The position numbers and the translations under genes are program-made. The notes below the pieces were generated by a model, which had not been told where the DNA came from, searched no databases, and worked only from the letters and a program-made list of their open reading frames with translations. Shown piece after piece: positions 6,809 through 64,000 of a stretch of DNA of 64,000 nt; the first letter of the stretch is position 1; every line of letters starts with the position of its first letter. The stretch comes from Trichosphaerium sp. ATCC 40318. Lineage: Eukaryota; Protista; Tubulinea. The stretch lies in contig JALMLS010000424.1 of assembly GCA_038496445.1 (NCBI GenBank), positions 65,851 through 129,850 of the forward strand, given 5' to 3'.

Positions 6809-7906
6809 ATGTTCATGAAAGCAGTATACCAATCATCATACGGTAACCCTAAGGACGTTTTAAGCTTAAGAAATGATATTCCGAAGCCTGTGCCCGAAGA
6901 TGATCAAATAATCGTTAAAGTATGCTATGCATCAGTTCACCCAGATGTATGGCATGTCGTATGGGGTTTACCGTACTTTTTAAGATTGATGGGAGCCGGT
7001 TTTTTGTCACCTATTAAGAAAATACCTGGGACGGATATGTCGGGCGTAGTAGATAGCGTTGGTAAGAACGTTTCAAAATTTAAAGAGGGACAGTACGTTT
7101 TTGGTGAAACATGCAGTAATTTCCAATGGGCAAACGCTGGTGCGTTTGCAGAGTATGTAGCAGTTAAAGAAAAAGATGTAGAGTTGAAACCGAAGAACTT
7201 GACATTCGCACAAGCATGTGGTTTACCAACATCAGGATTTATAGCGTACTACAACCTCATGAACGAAGGCAAGTTCAAAAAAGGCCAATCAGTATTAATA
7301 AACGGCGCTGGCGGAGGTGTCGGACTTTTGACTATACAACTCGTAAAAGCACTTGGAGGAACAGTCACAGCTGTTGACAGTAAGGAAAAGCTTGATTTAA
7401 TGAAGTCTTTGGGCGCTGATGATGTCGTTGATTATGCTGAGAAGAATTTCACTGAAAGTGATAAAAAATATGACTTGGTTTTTGATGTTCCGGGAAACTA
7501 CCCAATAGATGATTGTAGAAGAGTTTTAAAAGGTTCTGAGTCTAAATACATTTTGGTTGGACATGATAACTACGACAGAACAAGTCATCGTTGGCTTGGA
7601 AGTACGATACCGAAGATGCTTGGAGATGTTGCAAAGTACATGGTTTTTGGACAAAAAGCAGTTGCAAAACCTATTGATGACAAGCCTGTTGCGACCACAG
7701 ATAATGTTGATGTTGATTTCAATGATTATGTCTTTGGTAAAGAAAGCTCTTTGAAGGTCTTGTGTAGATTAGCAGAAGAAGGAAAGATGACCCAACCTAT
7801 TGATTCTGTGTTCAGTCTAGATAAAGTTCCTGATGCTATTGAACATTTACAAAATGGTAAAACTATTGGTAAAGTTGTTATTCAAATATGCAAAGACTAC
7901 GACTAA
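6809..7906 (+). CDS. Medium-chain dehydrogenase/reductase (NAD(P)H quinone oxidoreductase-like, zinc-independent), intronless
   Basis: 365-aa ORF with MKAVY..YG, PGTDMSGVV..VG, GAFAEY, Rossmann motif VLINGAGGGVG and C-terminal GKVVI. Confidence 0.9.
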   Translation: MFMKAVYQSSYGNPKDVLSLRNDIPKPVPEDDQIIVKVCYASVHPDVWHVVWGLPYFLRLMGAGFLSPIKKIPGTDMSGVVDSVGKNVSKFKEGQYVFGETCSNFQWANAGAFAEYVAVKEKDVELKPKNLTFAQACGLPTSGFIAYYNLMNEGKFKKGQSVLINGAGGGVGLLTIQLVKALGGTVTAVDSKEKLDLMKSLGADDVVDYAEKNFTESDKKYDLVFDVPGNYPIDDCRRVLKGSESKYILVGHDNYDRTSHRWLGSTIPKMLGDVAKYMVFGQKAVAKPIDDKPVATTDNVDVDFNDYVFGKESSLKVLCRLAEEGKMTQPIDSVFSLDKVPDAIEHLQNGKTIGKVVIQICKDYD

Positions 7907-7991
7907 GTAAGTACTTGAGATTTGATTATTGTATGGAGTATTAGACAATAAATAAAAAAAAAACATGTTTCTAGTATAACAGCTGTCCTGT

Positions 7992-8687
7992 TTACTGCTT
8001 GCGGTTGTTATCAAGCCAATCCTTCACTTGCTGTTGAGAGAAGTCTTTCATTTCCAGTGCTAGCTTGTTTGTTCTCTCAGCGTCTCTGCCACACTTGAAC
8101 TCTCGTAAAACGTACCTATGCGATCCAAGAGTCACCACTGCTACTTTATCCATTACTATCAGTGGAATTTGTTTGTCAAACATCATGATACATGATGGAG
8201 CATTCATCTTGGTCCGACCATCCACCCATCTCCTGAAACCAACAGTTTTGAGATTGAACGCCTTTGCAATCTGTTCTTGTAAGGCCATCATACATTCATT
8301 TGAAGTTGTGAAAGGAAATCCTGTTACATACACCTGTTTCGCACCAGCAGCATGGAAGCTGGTAACGATCTTGTTGCCAAAATATTCCACCATACCCTCA
8401 TGAAGTGCGTTGTCAATGGTTTCATCCTTACTGTACGTGATAGTAACACGTGATCCTCTCGTTTTAATTGCACGTGGGGATTTATTGAGCATGCGGAAAG
8501 TGTCGTTGACCAGTCTTTTTACCTGTGAAAGGATATCGCGTTCTGTACTGGACATTTTGTAGCCCTTCAGGCCAATAATCGCAATGTTGGCAACTGTGGT
8601 ATTTAGATCCAATTTTGATTTCTGCTTGATGTTTGGTTTATGTAGCGTTGATTTTTTACTGTACACAGTTGCGTTAGGCTTAGACAC
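7992..8687 (-). CDS. Hypothetical protein, possibly tandem RRM-like domains (LINE ORF1-like); start uncertain
   Basis: 231-aa uninterrupted ORF; the frame stays open upstream to a possible acceptor near 8740. Beta-alpha pattern KQVYVTGFPF...LQEQIAKAF...GFRRW...CIMMF. Confidence 0.45.
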   Translation of the reverse strand: MSKPNATVYSKKSTLHKPNIKQKSKLDLNTTVANIAIIGLKGYKMSSTERDILSQVKRLVNDTFRMLNKSPRAIKTRGSRVTITYSKDETIDNALHEGMVEYFGNKIVTSFHAAGAKQVYVTGFPFTTSNECMMALQEQIAKAFNLKTVGFRRWVDGRTKMNAPSCIMMFDKQIPLIVMDKVAVVTLGSHRYVLREFKCGRDAERTNKLALEMKDFSQQQVKDWLDNNRKQ

Positions 8688-9235
8688 GCGATCAGAGTGT
8701 TTGGTATCCAGATGATGATTCTGTGACCTCTTATTGACCCTACGTCTCTTCTTTATGCGAGAATCGCGTCCGTGCGCTAAACAAACGGTTTAAGAATAAA
8801 TAAAACGAATCCTCAAACGAAAAACTACGTATGAAGGCGCACCAGACATTTAAACCAGCTAATCGTTCTATTGGTGCTCGAGATACAATTGTTTTGAGGC
8901 TAGAAGTGGTTACCATGTAATATTTCTGGTTTTTGATAGCCAAATCTGGTATGTCTTGTCGTAGACTGACACTTCAAATTTCCGAGCTGTACATGTCGTT
9001 GTAGAAGTGTCGAATAACTATACAAGGCTGACAGCAAACATGAACGCACAACTAGAGTAACAAGGAGTACAAAGCCATTGCATTTATATTGGTTCCCTTG
9101 GTATTCATTAGACGGTAGGTATTCCACGCAAGCAACGCTTACACAACATGGAGAGTATGTTCGAAAAAAAACAGTCTTTTTTTGGATAATTTGACACTTT
9201 AGGTTCAGCAGGTGATTTAGGCCTTAAAACAAATT

Positions 9236-54770: not shown

Positions 54771-54781
54771 AAAAAAAAAAA
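54771..54781 (-). terminator. RNA polymerase III oligo-dT terminator
   Basis: A run of 11 on + (T11 on the transcribed strand) immediately follows the tRNA-Leu discriminator base. Confidence 0.8.
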
Positions 54782-54869
54782 TGCAGAGAGTGGGACTCGA
54801 ACCCACACGTGGTTACACACCACACTGCGTCCTTAACGCAGCCTCATTAACCAATTCGAGCACCTCTGC
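54782..54869 (-). tRNA. tRNA-Leu(AAG)
   Basis: Acceptor GCAGAGG/TCTCTGC-A, anticodon arm CTGCG-TTAAGGA-CGCAG, long variable arm GTGGT..ACCAC, T-arm GTGGG-TTCGAGT-CCCAC. Confidence 0.93.
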
Positions 54870-54877
54870 AAGGTATG

Positions 54878-54948
54878 TGGGACAACCAGGAATCGAACCT
54901 GAACTGCAGCACCTTCAATGCCATGTGCTTCCATTACACCATTATCCC
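54878..54948 (-). tRNA. tRNA with GAA anticodon (Phe), atypical 71-nt body
   Basis: Acceptor GGGATAA/TTGTCCC-A, D arm GTGT-AATGGAA-GCAC, anticodon arm TGGCA-TTGAAGG-TGCTG, 4-nt variable loop, T-arm TCAGG-TTCGATT-CCTGG. Confidence 0.85.
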
Positions 54949-57517: not shown

Positions 57518-58245
57518 TCAGAGTCATACAACAATACAGCTCTAAGTATGTGCAAAGTCACATGCTTAGGTGGACGACAGGAGTCAAAGTGCTCCAATCA
57601 ATCCGCAAAAGCTGTATCACATCCAAAACAACCCAATGGAAAGACAAAGTATCAAGTACTTGGGTAATAATAGATGTGAGCCTGAAGCAGAAATGTGAAA
57701 AGGGCAAATTGACGGAAAGGCACACAAGCCAAGTACATCAACACAACAAGTGTAGCCAAGTTGCTACAACTTGAAGACTCAACAAGGAAAGGCACAGTCC
57801 AAGTACTTGAATAGTAAACAAAATCAAAACAAAAAGAGTGTATGAAAAATGATGCAGTTGCAAGCTATTACCGACGATGCCTCAAGGGCTACTCAGTAAA
57901 AAATAGGCATGACTCATCAAGAAAAGTAGTCCTTTAAAAGACACAACCCTATGCTGTTGTGGCAATGTGCTCTATGAGCATCTCTTGCCATAAAAACCAT
58001 AACCAAGACACATCAGCTTCTTCTCCAACAAGAAAGGCTGATGTTGTCCGGCACCAGGTATTTGTGATGTTCATCAAAAAGACTTTCATCTTACATCCTC
58101 CTTGAAAGAGAATAGGAATAAAGATTGAATGGTTTCTTATGAAGTTCATTCTTCAAAAAACCACCTAAAAACCTCAACCACCTTTGGTCTGATGAGAATT
58201 TATTTTAAATGCAGCTATCTGCTTTAAAAACTCTGATGCAAAAGG

Positions 58246-60894
58246 TACCTGGTTGAGCCTGCCAGGAGTGATAAGCTTTCTCGAAGGATTAAGCCATGCA
58301 AGCTCAGCAAAGAGGTATCCTCGGAGCCGCAAACGGCTCCTTAAAACGGTCGTAACCCACCCGACAAGACTAATAATGGTCACGTCATTTTGCACACAGG
58401 AACTCGTTTCCTAAACGCACTATAACCAAAACTCGTGGCCTCCCCCGCGGATAACCGGGATTAAAGGAAACCTGCGGCTAATACGTAATGCGCCTAGCGC
58501 TGCCGATGGGCCCCTCTGCTGCAAGGACCCATCGGTCGCATCCAACGCTCAGGAGCGGACGATCACCCGATCCCATCTTGGTTCGCCAAGGGAAGCAGCC
58601 TCCCCTTAGGAAGCGGCGTCCGTACTCCGTCGGGAAGAGCGGCGTTGGGGCATGCGATGGAGTTACGAGGAGTTCTCTCTGACTAGACATGTTACTAAAA
58701 AAAGGTGTTAAGTTACACAAGGTGAAACTAGGTGAAAGAAAAATGAACATTGTTCAAATCTCGATCCTTCGCCATGAATGTGCTTTTTCATAAAAAAGAT
58801 CATATCGATATAAAGTTGAGAGTTCTCCCCCTCCACGAGTCGGAAGGGCGGCCGACCTATCAGCCAGGCGGTAGGGTAACGGCCTACCGCGGCAGTGACG
58901 GGTAACGGGGAACTAGGGTTCGGTTCCCGGAGAAGGGGCATTAGATACGGCCCCTGTACTTACGGGTAACAGCAGGCGCGTAACTTGGCCATTGATTGCA
59001 AATCGAGCCAGCGACTGAGTGTAACGAGGCCGGCATTTAAACCGGTCGTCGCAATGAGGGGCAACTGAATGTCGCCCTGAGAAACTATTGGAGGACAAGT
59101 TGGGTGCCAGCACCCGCGGTAACACCCACTCCGAAAGCTTATACTTTTGCTGTTGCTGTTAAAGCGCTCGCAGTCCAAACAACGACACAGCTGAGAGGGA
59201 TAAGGTTTAGACGAGAATTTATTCTCTGACAAAACCCCCGACTCTTTTTCATCGCCCGACCAGGCATAAATGGCTTCGCTCAAACGCAAGGTCAGTTTAG
59301 GCTTCGGCCGCTATGCCACCCACCAGCATCCTGGAATTGGGCTTTAAAAAAACAAAAACAACACTTTACCAAGTGCGACGCTCGAGTCTCATTTTACTAA
59401 GTATGAACAATATCCTGAAATGCAAGTCTGAGTGAAAACTTATGTTCTTCATTAAGGGAATAAAAACATTGTGAATTATGCAAGTATTCTTGAGAAAAAC
59501 TTGAGTTAGTCTTCACACTAATAAAGAACACACGATTACTAGGTGCGTACGGGGTAGAGAGTGTGGTATCAGCGAGGAGTGAAATCTTTTGACCTGATCC
59601 AAACTACCCGAAGCGAAGGCGCTCTGCAAGGGCGTGGCCGGTGATCTAGAACGATGGTGGAGGGAGCGAAGCGGATTAGAGACCCGTGTAGTCTCCACAG
59701 TAAACGATGCCGACTGAATGGGCGCCGGGCAAACCAAGGCTCGGGGCCCGTTCCCACGGGAAACCGAAGTAATCGGGCCCAGGGGGGAAGTATGGTCGCA
59801 AGGCTGAAACTTAAAGGCATTGACGGAGCAACACCACCAGGCTCTGGAGGCTGCGGCTCAATTTGACTCAACGCGCGACAACTTACCGGGATCGGACGCT
59901 CTAAGGGGACGAACAGACTGAAGGGTCTTTTCCGAGTTAGCTAACGGTGGTGCATGGTCGTTTTAGGCTCGTGGACTTATCTGTCAGGTTTATTCCGATA
60001 ACGGGCGAGATCGCTACTGTCACATTGATTCCCCCGCCTCGTGCGGGACCCCTGTGCAGGACTGACGGCGAAAAGTCGTAAGAAGCGGCGGCTATAACAG
60101 ATCCGGGATGCCCCCAGATATTCCGGGCCGCACGCGGCCTACACTGCTTAGTTCAACGGGTTCCTGGGCCGAACAGGCATCCGGGCAAGCCCTGAAACCG
60201 CCAGAACACTTCTTCACGACAGCGAGTTAAACCTCAGATTTTATTATCTAAATACGACTACACTTAAACGCACCTTCGGAAACTACTACCTTCAAAACAA
60301 AGTCTGTCCTGAACCTAATATAAAGAGTTAACCCCCTCGTCGAGGCTTTTTAGGAAGTTAAATTCCTTTAATGTTAAGATGAGAAGCGCTGTTAGATGAA
60401 AACTTACATCTTTGGACTTGTTCCTTAGTGTAAACATTGAAAGAGCTGTGGATCGTTTCAAATTAACAAACAAGGTTTCTTCTTCACTTAAATGCTTTGA
60501 CTTGGAAGATTATATCTTTACCAAGGCAAACTTTATTATGAAGCAAGTTTCTGCAATGTTCATAAAAAAATACATGAAAGCGCACCGTGTGGTCGATTTG
60601 GATGTTAAGTGTGCTCAATGCTGCTTCTTCGAAAAGACACATGCGTGCTTAGGGACTGGTTGCTGTAACTGTAGCCACGAACGCGGAATGCCTCGTACAG
60701 GTGTGTCATCAACGCACCTGGAATCTGTCCCTGTTGCTTGTACACACCGCCCGTCGCATCGACCGATGTGGGTGCGAGTGAGACCAGGGGGGACGACCGG
60801 CTTGCCGGTTATCGAACCTGCTCGAACTTGCGCTCATAAAGGATGATGAAGTCGTAACAAGGTTTCAGTAGGTGAACCTGCTGAAGGATCAATA
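58246..60894 (+). rRNA. Eukaryotic SSU (18S-type) rRNA, highly divergent, about 2.65 kb including AT-rich insertions
   Basis: TACCTGGTTGAGCCTGCCAG, GATTAAGCCATGCA, GTGCCAGCACCCGCGGTAA, GAAACTTAAAGGCATTGACGG, TTGTACACACCGCCCGTC and AAGTCGTAACAAGG...GTAGGTGAACCTGCTGAAGGATCA. Confidence 0.96.
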
Positions 60895-61133
60895 CTATTG
60901 GTATTTAACCCTTAGAAGCAATTAAACCAACTTTTAACCAAGTTTAAAAGAAAAAAATTGGAGTATCAGCTCTGGTTTGGTAAATCTGATCTTACTTCGG
61001 TAATTGAAGATGTAATCATCCTCTGCTGTGGTGATATCTTGTATATCTGCCAGCTCCACAACCGCCATTTTGGCAAACCAAAAACACAGTCGTGGCACGA
61101 CTATAAAGAACGTCAAGATTTTCGAAAGAAACC
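60895..61133 (+). other. ITS1
   Basis: AT-rich spacer between the SSU 3' end and the 5.8S-like sequence; boundaries approximate. Confidence 0.75.
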
Positions 61134-61300
61134 AAACCTTGTCGGTGAACGGTTAGGCACCTCCCCCGAAGAAGGCCATGGATCACTATGAAACCAGCCA
61201 CCGGAATCGCTCTCATCTGAAGGTGGCATTGCCGAATGCCTCAGGCCGCGTTCTGTATTCTCACGAATCACAGGCAAAGGAGCGTGACTCAGCGACGCCA
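61134..61300 (+). rRNA. 5.8S rRNA, strongly divergent
   Basis: Position and length, plus colinear remnants of 5.8S motifs (AAACCTT...TAGG...CGAAGAAG...GAATCGC...GAATGC). Boundaries approximate. Confidence 0.7.
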
Positions 61301-61500
61301 GCAAAACAAACACTAAATTTATTTGGTGCTGCGTATGGTGTACACACTTAATCTTCTAAAAAAAGAAAGTGGTTGCCACAACTAATTAATAAATTGCCGG
61401 AAGTGATGTTCCTCCAGAACTCATGCCTAGCTTACTTAAGCGAAGCTTTAGAGGGAAGGTTGGTTTACATACTGAACTGAAAGCATTAAAAAAACACAAC
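61301..61500 (+). other. ITS2
   Basis: AT-rich spacer bounded by GCAAAACAAACACT and AAAAAAACACAAC, between 5.8S and the LSU start. Confidence 0.72.
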
Positions 61501-64000
61501 TTGCGTCCTGAGTTACACTTGGCGACCTGCCTAAGTTAAGCATATCATTGGGGCAGAGGAAAGGAAACCAAAAGGGACTCCCTGAGTAGCGGCGAGCGAA
61601 AGGGGACAAGCTCAAGCCTGAATCCGAGCCTAGCATCGGAGTTGTGGGCTAAGGCGTGGTGGCTCTTCCAGACGTTGACGGGAATTACGCACGAGTCGTA
61701 GCCGTAGAGGGTGCGAGCCCCGTACGCTGTCAACTGAGGAAATAGAGTCCCATCGTCCAGGAGTAGTATGGTTTGGCCGTGCCATACGAAGTTACCGGGA
61801 GGTTACCCGGCAAGGCTAAGTATCGGGAGGTGGCCGATAGCGCACCAGTACCGTGAGGGAAGACTGAAACAGCACTCCTCGATAGAGGGTTAAAAGACCC
61901 GAAGCCGGCAAGGGTACAAATGGCACGGAGTACGTAGGTGCCCTGCACCTAATCTGCACATGGCAGACGCTCTTGTAGCGAGGGAAAAGCGACCGGGGCC
62001 TTGTGCCCTGGAAGATTATAATGAAACAAAACGTCGAGGGGAAGGTAATAGAAGTGACTAACACAAAAAAGTCATACTGGCTAACTGTGCTGTCCACACC
62101 ATCCTACAAGCTGAAAAGCATAAAAACGTGGGTTTGGTTGAAAGGACATCAAAAAGCACTTTTAAACCTTTAAATGGCGTTGGTTCACTGAAATTACTGA
62201 AACCTCCGAATGTACGTCTTCTTCCGAAAGGAACGAAGTTCGTCATTCATCGTCCACAACCTCAATGAGGCTCTATGCCCTTATTGGGCCATGGCCTCCG
62301 TGTATCCCGTCTTGAAACACGGATCAAGGAGTTCGCCGAGCGTGCGAGGGTGAGAGATCAAACCTCCAACCCGCACAGAAATGAAGCCAAGGATAAGCTC
62401 CTAGGCCGTCAAGTTCTTTATATAAAAACAAACGTATTACATTACATGTATAAGTTTGCAAAGATCGACATAAAAAACCGACTATGCTATTATCATGTTT
62501 TATGTTACGCAAGTAATTAAAAACACGTCACACCAAAGTAGATACACTTTGCCATCTCCGGCGTTGTTCTCTTGGCAGGCGATAGTACGTTGGGCGATAC
62601 CCGAAAGGTAGCGATCTATACCCGAAAGGGGGAAGGCGGGAGAAATCCCGCTGGACGCCCGTAGCGTTGCTGACGTGCAAATCGCTCGCCGGACATTGGG
62701 TATAGGGGCGAGAGACCAAACGAGCTGCCAACGTAGCTGGTACCGTTCGAAGTATCCCTAAGGATAGAGGGGGTCCGTGACGCCGGTCTCGTCTCGTAGA
62801 GCCACTGGAAAGAGGTATCGGAGGCCAAAGTTGCCATCGACCTATTATCAAACACATAAGAGGCGACCGATCACAGGCCGAATGGCTGTGATCACCGAGA
62901 CGGTGGACCCCTATTGGGCCGGTCTTGATAAGCAGGACTGACGAGACGGTTTTAAACGCGAGCAGCAGCAAAGGCGCCCGAATAGGCAGTAACCAAGACA
63001 ACGAAGGCGGTGTTCCAGTTTAGACAGCTGGAAGGTGGACATGGAAGTCGTCATCCTCTAAGGAGTGAGTAACTTCTCACCAGCCGAATTGGGACGCGCC
63101 GAAAATGGATGGCGCTAAACTGCCTTAGCCGCCGCTGCGCGATCGCCCCGGCTCGGCCCAGGGTGCGGTAGGACGGCGTGCTGGTGGCGTAGAAGGGGGG
63201 CGGTGGCGTCCACCCGGAGCCACCAGCAGTGATGATCTTGGTGGTAGTAGCAATTGGAGCCTGGTGAAACAGTGTTTATCACAGCCAGGTCGCCAAGTGG
63301 GGAAGGGTTTCGCGGTGATGGCATTCAGCTGCGAGTTAGCCGGTCCTAAGCCAGCTCCTAATAGAGTATACTGTTTGATGCTGGCAGACGACACTTGTTC
63401 AGATGAACTTTACTGTTTCTGAAGACTGGTGGAAGTCTGCGATGCTTTCAACTCGGCGAAAGGCAACCTGGTGAGTAATCCAGGGCATGGGTAAGGAGGA
63501 TGCATTTGCTTTAGAAGTGGCAACACTGAGAGAGAGAGCGCACGCGAGCAACCACACTTCTGGGGCCTTCTCCCGCGCCTAAGCTATTCGAGGGAAACTC
63601 CCCGGAGCCACGTAAAGCGGCGAAGGGAAAGAGTCGAGGGTAGCTAATGGGAAAGCACTTTTGCTTTCTAGGGGTGTTGGTGAGCTCGTTCTCACGAGGC
63701 TGCTCCTCTCCGAAGCCGACACTTTCGGGTGTTCAGTGTCCTCCAGGCTCATACCGTACCGAAAACCGCATCAGGTCCCCTAGGTTAGTCACCTCTGGCG
63801 CTGCACGGTGTAAACGGCGTAAGGGAAGTCGGCATACGCGGCCCGTAACTTCGGGAAAAGGGCTGGCTCTGCTGACCGGGACCCGACGACGTGCGTCTGC
63901 GCTACTTCAGTGTAGCCCCTTCGGGAATGGCGCACAGTCCCTGCAAAGAGGTCCACAGCGGATCATGGCGGAACTCTCAGAAGCTTAGAGAACCCAACTG
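61501..64000 (+). rRNA. LSU (28S-type) rRNA, 5' portion, truncated by the window; AT-rich insertions in D2, D3 and D7a
   Basis: AAGTTAAGCATATC, GAGTAGCGGCGAGCGAA, GTACCGTGAGGGAAAG, CCCGTCTTGAAACACGGATCAAGGAG, GTGCAAATCGCTCG, GAAAATGGATGGCGCT, GATCTTGGTGGTAGTAGCAA and GTAAGGGAAGTCGGCA...CGTAACTTCGGGAAAAGG. Confidence 0.96.

Follow-up and report, generated by a model that had tools for sequence, protein, structure and literature searches.

Probable extra internal transcribed spacers in the nuclear small-subunit ribosomal RNA gene of the amoeba Trichosphaerium sp.

A stretch of 64,000 nucleotides (nt) from Trichosphaerium sp. ATCC 40318 (contig JALMLS010000424.1, positions 65,851 to 129,850 of the forward strand; hereafter the window) was analysed for the structure of its small-subunit (SSU) ribosomal RNA (rRNA) gene. 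The Rfam model of eukaryotic SSU rRNA (SSU_rRNA_eukarya, RF01960) was matched over its whole length (model positions 1-1831 of 1831) with 1034 bits, the gathering score being 50. The limits of the match, 58246-60894, were those given in the first-pass annotation, made from the sequence alone. The core of the gene is GC-rich (GC content 0.534-0.619) and is interrupted by four AT-rich blocks, as that annotation had described: 58364-58433 (0.386), 58681-58817 (0.314), 59343-59532 (0.311) and 60201-60643 (0.366). It had likened their composition to that of the internal transcribed spacers (ITS) rather than of the rRNA, and this was borne out: the blocks have 31-39% GC, and the values were 0.37 for the external transcribed spacer (ETS), 0.379 for ITS1 and 0.377 for ITS2. 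The remainder of the window has a GC content of 0.38. Without the 840 nt of the blocks, 1809 of the 2649 nt are left, in line with the 1.8 kb estimated earlier.

The positions of the inserts were taken from the Rfam alignment. In variable region V2, 328 nt stand opposite 36 model positions. In V4/E23, nucleotides 59270-59402 were unaligned and those onward to about 59530 were aligned at low posterior probability. In helix 41 (V8), 456 nt stand opposite 23 model positions. V2, V4 and helix 41 are the sites that had been named for the inserts, and V7 and the tip of helix 44 (V9) were shortened, also as stated. All three sites are variable, surface-exposed helices, as expected for additional spacers. 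Neither a group I or group II intron nor any other Rfam family was detected in the SSU blocks at the gathering score or at E-values up to 5, in agreement with the reported lack of group I intron hallmarks. The blocks contained no open reading frame (ORF) longer than 52 amino acids, and no copies of them were found elsewhere in the window; a mobile element or a coding insert was rejected on these grounds. Better folding of the variable segments on the antisense strand was rejected as well, the minimum free energies of the sense and antisense strands of blocks 2 to 4 being alike (-46.4/-46.3, -90.5/-92.6 and -126.0/-123.2).

Contigs assembled from sequencing runs were placed on the window, and depth comparisons were confined to contigs or bins lying wholly inside one part of the gene. 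Three runs were compared: X2, labelled 'RNA?'; X4, recorded as an RNA library; and X15, which is DNA-like. X2 was taken to be RNA because the ratio of core depth to ETS depth was 100-1000-fold. Its core bins ranged from 146,000 to 591,000, against 1,124, 567 and 309 for bins confined to blocks 3 and 4. A clean core contig (59657-59802) had a depth of 15,888, against 238.7 for block 3 (59312-59566) and 76.9 for block 4 (60431-60543); the depths were 449 for the 5' ETS and 44.5 for ITS1, and no X2 contig lay on 58666-58786 in block 2. The pattern was the same in X4, with core bins of 7,000-178,000 against block contigs of 41-175 (block 2, 108.9; block 3, 175; block 4, 41.5); the 5' ETS and ITS1 contigs were at 155 and 22.8. 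In X15 the core bins were flat (60-375), the block 2 contig was at 33.8, and contigs bridged core and insert (58795-59471, 59789-60285 and 60431-60859); therefore the inserts are present in the DNA of most or all gene copies. In both X2 and X4, blocks 2 to 4 thus had the depth of the ETS and ITS1, 100-1000 times below the cores, as would be the case for sequences absent from the mature rRNA. It had been predicted that RNA coverage should fall over the inserts as over the ITS, and for these three blocks it did.

Low depth could also have arisen artificially, during assembly or when the libraries were prepared, the blocks being large expansions retained in a continuous mature SSU rRNA of 2.65 kb, as in Euglena and foraminifera. 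The blocks do sit at known expansion sites (V2/ES3, V4/ES6 and helix 41/ES10), Amoebozoa with long SSU genes are on record (PMC3145751) and the depth figures are per contig. Contigs of the RNA libraries also run unbroken across junctions of core and insert (X4, 58332-58487, 58636-58819 and 60176-60756; X2, 59312-59566). DNA carry-over may account for them, and the blocks are therefore either in the transcript or in contaminating DNA. Retention was nevertheless judged unlikely. It does not fit the observation that two RNA runs cover the blocks as thinly as the ETS and ITS1 when the DNA-like run is flat. Composition bias is not the cause of the dips, because a GC-rich part of the V4 insert (59237-59342, 106 nt) was as shallow as the AT-rich part. 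Depth in X4 also changed stepwise from piece to piece (approximately 1.7K, 7-9K, 23-103K, 44-178K and 0.1-0.5K), a pattern that would be expected of separate molecules of different size after library clean-up.

Removal of the blocks as introns was examined in the joint table of four runs. No joint closing a block was found at any block border in these runs; joints with sides of 21-42 nt were detected elsewhere. No ligated exon-exon junction was present in X2 or X4, despite a core depth of 10^4 to 10^5. The flanks of the blocks were thus not found rejoined, and the earlier expectation that no sequence should span the junctions held. Depletion in RNA would be shared by introns removed with ligation, whether group I, spliceosomal or of the endonuclease type. 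It would be shared too by a silent, insert-bearing gene copy beside expressed copies free of inserts, and dispersed rDNA copies up to 3% divergent are known in Trichosphaerium sp. (PMC10521059). Both are very improbable, in view of the missing joints in RNA and DNA runs, of the lack of an intron family and of a homing-enzyme ORF, and of the X15 contigs that bridge core and insert at core-like depth.

Blocks 2 to 4 therefore behave as extra internal transcribed spacers: they have spacer-level depth, no closing joints and no intron, other family, ORF or repeat. We consider with good confidence that the SSU gene contains at least three such spacers, in V2, V4/ES6 and helix 41/V8, and perhaps a fourth before helix 8, and the functional SSU rRNA is probably an assembly of four or five separate molecules. 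The first-pass annotation had left the choice between excised spacers and retained expansions undecided. Depth, the missing joints and the flat profile of X15 favour excision for blocks 2 to 4, and for block 1 the data only suggest it.

Several points weigh against excision. All runs consisted of assembled contigs, each with a single depth figure, which is unsuited to ranking parts of a gene, and 32 of the approximately 5,000 placed contigs were listed individually. The identity of X2 as RNA is a guess. X4 is a metagenome with related variants, and X2, X4 and X15 also contain rRNA of other eukaryotes. The limits of the pieces, derived from contig depth, are approximate throughout. Contig ends abutting an adapter are weak evidence: one such end, at 61279, lies inside the last hairpin of the 5.8S rRNA, off the 3' end modelled by Rfam. 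As X15 has such ends too, they were rejected as RNA termini. The flanks of blocks 1 and 4 paired no better than shuffled sequences. Finally, there was no close relative of the window's SSU for comparison. A metagenome scan with a lineage-specific variant of the 530 loop yielded 15 loci with cores 68-80% alike and SSU genes of normal length (approximately 1.83 kb in L011); they did not serve for a test of covariation or rates. The environmental eukaryotic rDNAs on metagenome contigs L010 and L011 carry the unusual 530-loop variant GCACCCGCGGUAAC, with an SSU of approximately 1.83 kb and cores 73-89% alike.

The mixed content of the runs bears on a further possibility, that an abundant foreign organism, or an rDNA variant, whose cores resemble those of the window is the source of the deep core signal. 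In that case the rRNA of the window itself would be rare and the depth contrast uninformative. Loose contig ends at 59783 mark 18S rRNA of other eukaryotes in X2, X15 and X4. RNA-run contigs also skip 58488-58568 in V2 (81 nt; joint 58487>58569; depth 3,266 in X4) and 59181-59252 in V4 (72 nt; joint 59180>59253; depth 528.5 in X2). Processing is probably not the reason for these gaps; rDNA copies or strains are likely to differ in length at these places. Against a foreign origin, 2218 of the 3877 contigs placed in X2 were at least 99% identical to the window, and the share of contigs running on into unlike sequence was 0 both in X2 and in X4; a relative that lacks the inserts or has other ones is therefore unlikely to account for the deep signal. 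Where deep X2 contigs departed from the window, they did so only at the variable tip of helix 44. The missing block-closing joints likewise indicate that the abundant RNA neither lacks the inserts nor carries different ones. A foreign source of the cores was accordingly considered quite unlikely.

On the reading of the blocks as spacers, the pieces and spacers were delimited as follows (Table 1). The depth of piece P1 in X4, estimated from a bin value, was approximately 1-2 thousand. Between its 3' end (58347-58365) and the start of P3 (58839-58854) a helix of -23.3 kcal/mol can form (z = -4.3, beyond all 300 shuffles). Across block 1, the only listed RNA contig was X4 58332-58487, identical to the window and with a depth of 458.6. 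This is three times the depth of the ETS (155), but the next piece is at least 15 times deeper (neighbouring bins 7,429-8,943), which suggests, from this one run, that block 1 is removed from the RNA.

The depth of block 2 was 0 in X2 at 58666-58786, and its only contig in X4 was 58636-58819 (108.9). The limits of this contig were rejected as RNA ends, since identical limits occur in X15; they mark a polymorphism bubble. The flanks of block 2 pair at -32.1 kcal/mol (z = -2.0 against shuffles). A stem closing the V2 insert had been described in the first-pass annotation. Its strands (58669-58679 and 58818-58828) were confirmed, but they form 4 + 5 base pairs around a UU/UU mismatch and not a perfect stem of 11 base pairs.

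High depth in X2 ended by 59236, where a local hairpin predicted by folding (59204-59236) has its 3' foot, which forms the 3' end of P3. Depth was low over block 3 (X2 bins 1,124 and 4,848; X4 bins 192 and 53.5) and had reached 41,811 at 59568 in X2. The bin value of 4,848 is reproduced if 19 of its 167 positions have a depth of 41,811, which suggests a restart at 59551, and an adapter-abutted contig begins at this very position. It was the only end of this kind to be used, because the bin arithmetic supports it. Since high depth in X2 stops by 59236 and resumes at about 59551, the V4 spacer was placed at approximately 59237-59550. At its borders CCCC (59236-59239) pairs with GGGG (59551-59554), followed by nine more base pairs (z = -2.5, better than 295 of 300 shuffles). 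The AT-rich stretch 59343-59532 that had been annotated in V4 is thus real, but the excised stretch would begin about 106 nt earlier and take in GC-rich sequence as well, so that the spacer is not defined by composition alone.

The 3' limit of P4, which is the start of block 4, lies between 60176, where the low-depth X4 contig starts, and 60237. At the other end, X2 depth was already 3,080 at 60629, 40 times that of the interior of the helix 41 spacer, and 60604-60613 pairs with 60143-60153. This pairing consists of CAC/GUG plus six pairs, a pattern shared with helix 41 of yeast at its base. For these two reasons the helix 41 spacer probably ends near 60577. Of the annotated block 60201-60643, the start was thus nearly kept (about 60206) and the end was moved upstream. 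Four SSU pieces are supported and a fifth is likely.

Table 1. Features of the rDNA unit in the window (positions in the window; + is the forward strand).
Feature	Position	Strand	Basis and remarks
Complete nuclear SSU rRNA gene	58246..60894	+	Rfam RF01960, 2649 nt
Piece P1, ~120 nt; helices 1-6 and 5' strand of the long-range helix enclosing V2	58246..58365	+	Rfam alignment; 3' limit approximate
Block 1, ~70-nt insertion before helix 8	58366..58440	+	GC 0.386; shortest and mildest block
Piece P2, ~225 nt; helices 8-10 and GC-rich V2 expansion	58441..58665	+	X2 bins 164,827 / 185,381; GC 0.62; limits approximate
Block 2, probable V2 spacer	58666..58817	+	3' limit between 58787 and 58846
Piece P3, ~400 nt; helices 11-20 with 530 loop	58818..59236	+	X2 bins 103,036 / 591,143 / 270,712, then 1,124 from 59236
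Block 3, probable V4/ES6 spacer, ~314 nt	59237..59550	+	GC-rich 106 nt and AT-rich 59343-59532
Piece P4, ~655 nt; helices 22-40 and 5' strand of helix 41	59551..60205	+	X2 bins 146,107-242,419
Block 4, probable helix 41/V8 spacer, ~370 nt	60206..60577	+	X2 bins 567 / 309; X4 contig 60176-60756, depth 41.5
Piece P5, ~315 nt; 3' strand of helix 41, helices 42-45, decoding site	60578..60894	+	X2 bins 31,968 / 67,606; 5' limit approximate
ITS1 (control for spacer depth)	60895..61133	+	GC 0.38; depth 44 in X2, 47 in X4
Divergent 5.8S rRNA	61134..61297	+	RF00002, 27.8 bits (gathering score 42), E = 3.4e-5; E-value threshold only
Spacer-like block in LSU D2	62010..62225	+	GC 0.395; unaligned insertion at LSU model position ~466; X2 bin 3,561
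Spacer-like block in LSU D3	62381..62545	+	GC 0.325; X2 bin 3,445, X4 bin 120

The following course of processing is proposed. RNA polymerase I would transcribe straight through the blocks into one precursor. At least three blocks, and probably four, would then be excised and broken down as ITS1 and ITS2 are, their ends never being ligated. Each spacer would cap a surface helix that retains its base, and pairing is possible between the two flanks of block 2 and between those of block 3. By analogy with bacterial intervening sequences and with the LSU spacers of Euglenozoa, an endonuclease likely cuts the pre-rRNA in or near the basal stem and exonucleases trim the ends. The mature SSU rRNA would consist of four or five molecules of roughly 120, 225, 400, 655 and 315 nt, approximately 1.7 kb in total. 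Ribosomal proteins and the long-range helices usual in an SSU (for example that between the 3' end of P1 and the start of P3) would hold them in place.

Runs of five to seven A, often CATAAAAA, were found at 58226-58230, 58792-58797, 60564-60570, 61488-61494, 62119-62127 and 62468-62480. They lie 8-50 nt upstream of the starts of the SSU, of the large-subunit (LSU) rRNA and of pieces P3 and P5 as placed here, and also inside both LSU blocks. A-rich 8-mers occurred in four of nine spacer blocks, which was matched for any 8-mer by 1 of 200 mononucleotide shuffles. As such shuffles do not keep A-runs, the enrichment is suggestive only. The CATAAAAA-like run, present in four blocks and weakly above shuffles, may be a shared processing signal.

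Downstream of ITS1, the 5.8S rRNA has a 24-nt insertion in its last hairpin and an X2 bin of 512,122. The LSU rRNA starts at 61503 and continues past the end of the window, which holds its first 2.5 kb. Its D2 and D3 blocks (Table 1) lay 50-100 times below the LSU cores in the RNA runs, the flanks in X2 being at 160,000-620,000. Between them lies a piece of approximately 155 nt (62226-62380) that contains the conserved CCCGUCUUGAAACACGGA. Fragmentation of the LSU is likely as well, and since the D2 and D3 blocks are shallow in RNA, both subunit RNAs seem to be in pieces.

The rDNA unit (58246-64000) adjoins ordinary protein-coding DNA (1-56000) and is not part of a tandem array, which fits dispersed rDNA copies. 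Approximately 3.3 kb upstream of it, genes for tRNA-Leu(AAG) and tRNA-Phe(GAA) lie head to tail, 6 nt apart, on the minus strand (54781-54948). They may form a dicistronic tRNA pair. The genome of Trichosphaerium sp. has 70.87 Mb, 37.69% GC and 22 dispersed SSU copies (PMC10521059). Its SSU gene is very long (PMC3145751); 18S genes of approximately 2.43 kb were reported, with no more than 70-75% of their length alignable from one species to another (PMC11575492). No mention of rRNA pieces was found in these three papers.

Until now, cytosolic SSU rRNA has been regarded as always continuous. Phrase searches of the searchable literature for a fragmented 18S or SSU rRNA gave papers on organelles or unrelated papers only. 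In the papers searched, fragmentation of the SSU is described only for organelle ribosomes and cytosolic spacers only for the LSU, and a split cytosolic SSU, if confirmed, would be new. In our estimation this free-living amoeba probably builds its 40S subunit from at least five separate SSU pieces and its 60S subunit from a multiply split LSU, as the first case of a fragmented cytosolic SSU and one independent of Euglenozoa. If so, the breaks flank the platform and head domains, and the decoding site is carried on a separate piece of approximately 315 nt. Such a ribosome would test to what extent covalent continuity is needed for 40S assembly and decoding, would require new steps of pre-rRNA processing and would offer a second, independent lineage in which to ask why some ribosomes fragment. 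RNA-integrity scores, rRNA depletion, long-read 18S barcoding and reverse transcription-PCR across the sites would be unreliable for this organism.

The proposed spacers can be compared with several known systems. Bacterial intervening sequences occur in 23S and rarely in 16S rRNA and are excised by RNase III. They resemble the blocks as interpreted here in forming an extended stem-loop at the tip of a helix, excised at its basal stem without ligation to leave a fragmented but functional rRNA, and blocks 2 and 3 have pairing flanks; unlike them, the blocks are larger and several lie within one SSU. Extra internal transcribed spacers are known in the cytosolic LSU rRNA of euglenids, kinetoplastids, insects, some rodents, Plasmodium (S-type), Amoebozoa and dinoflagellates, and they divide the LSU of Euglena gracilis into 14 pieces and that of kinetoplastids into six (PMC9082867, PMC4008552). 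As in the euglenozoan LSU, where spacers in variable regions are co-transcribed and removed without ligation and the pieces are held by pairing, blocks are found here in D2 and D3 of the LSU too. In Euglena and kinetoplastids, however, only the LSU is split, whereas here the SSU appears to be, in an amoeba and not a euglenozoan. The mitochondrial SSU rRNAs of Chlamydomonas, Plasmodium and Tetrahymena also consist of several pieces joined non-covalently (PMC4008552, PMC3382252, PMC8660880). Those are organelle rRNAs whose gene pieces are often scrambled and separately transcribed; the pieces proposed here follow one another in order within a single nuclear rDNA unit. A likeness in position and gene length exists to Euglena, foraminifera and Amoebozoa with a long SSU (Pelomyxa and others), where the sites are also V2, V4 and helix 41 (PMC3145751, PMC9082867). 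The expansions of these organisms are retained in the mature rRNA, as stated for the 18S rRNA of Euglena (PMC9082867), whereas the blocks of Trichosphaerium sp. are depleted in RNA to the level of spacers.

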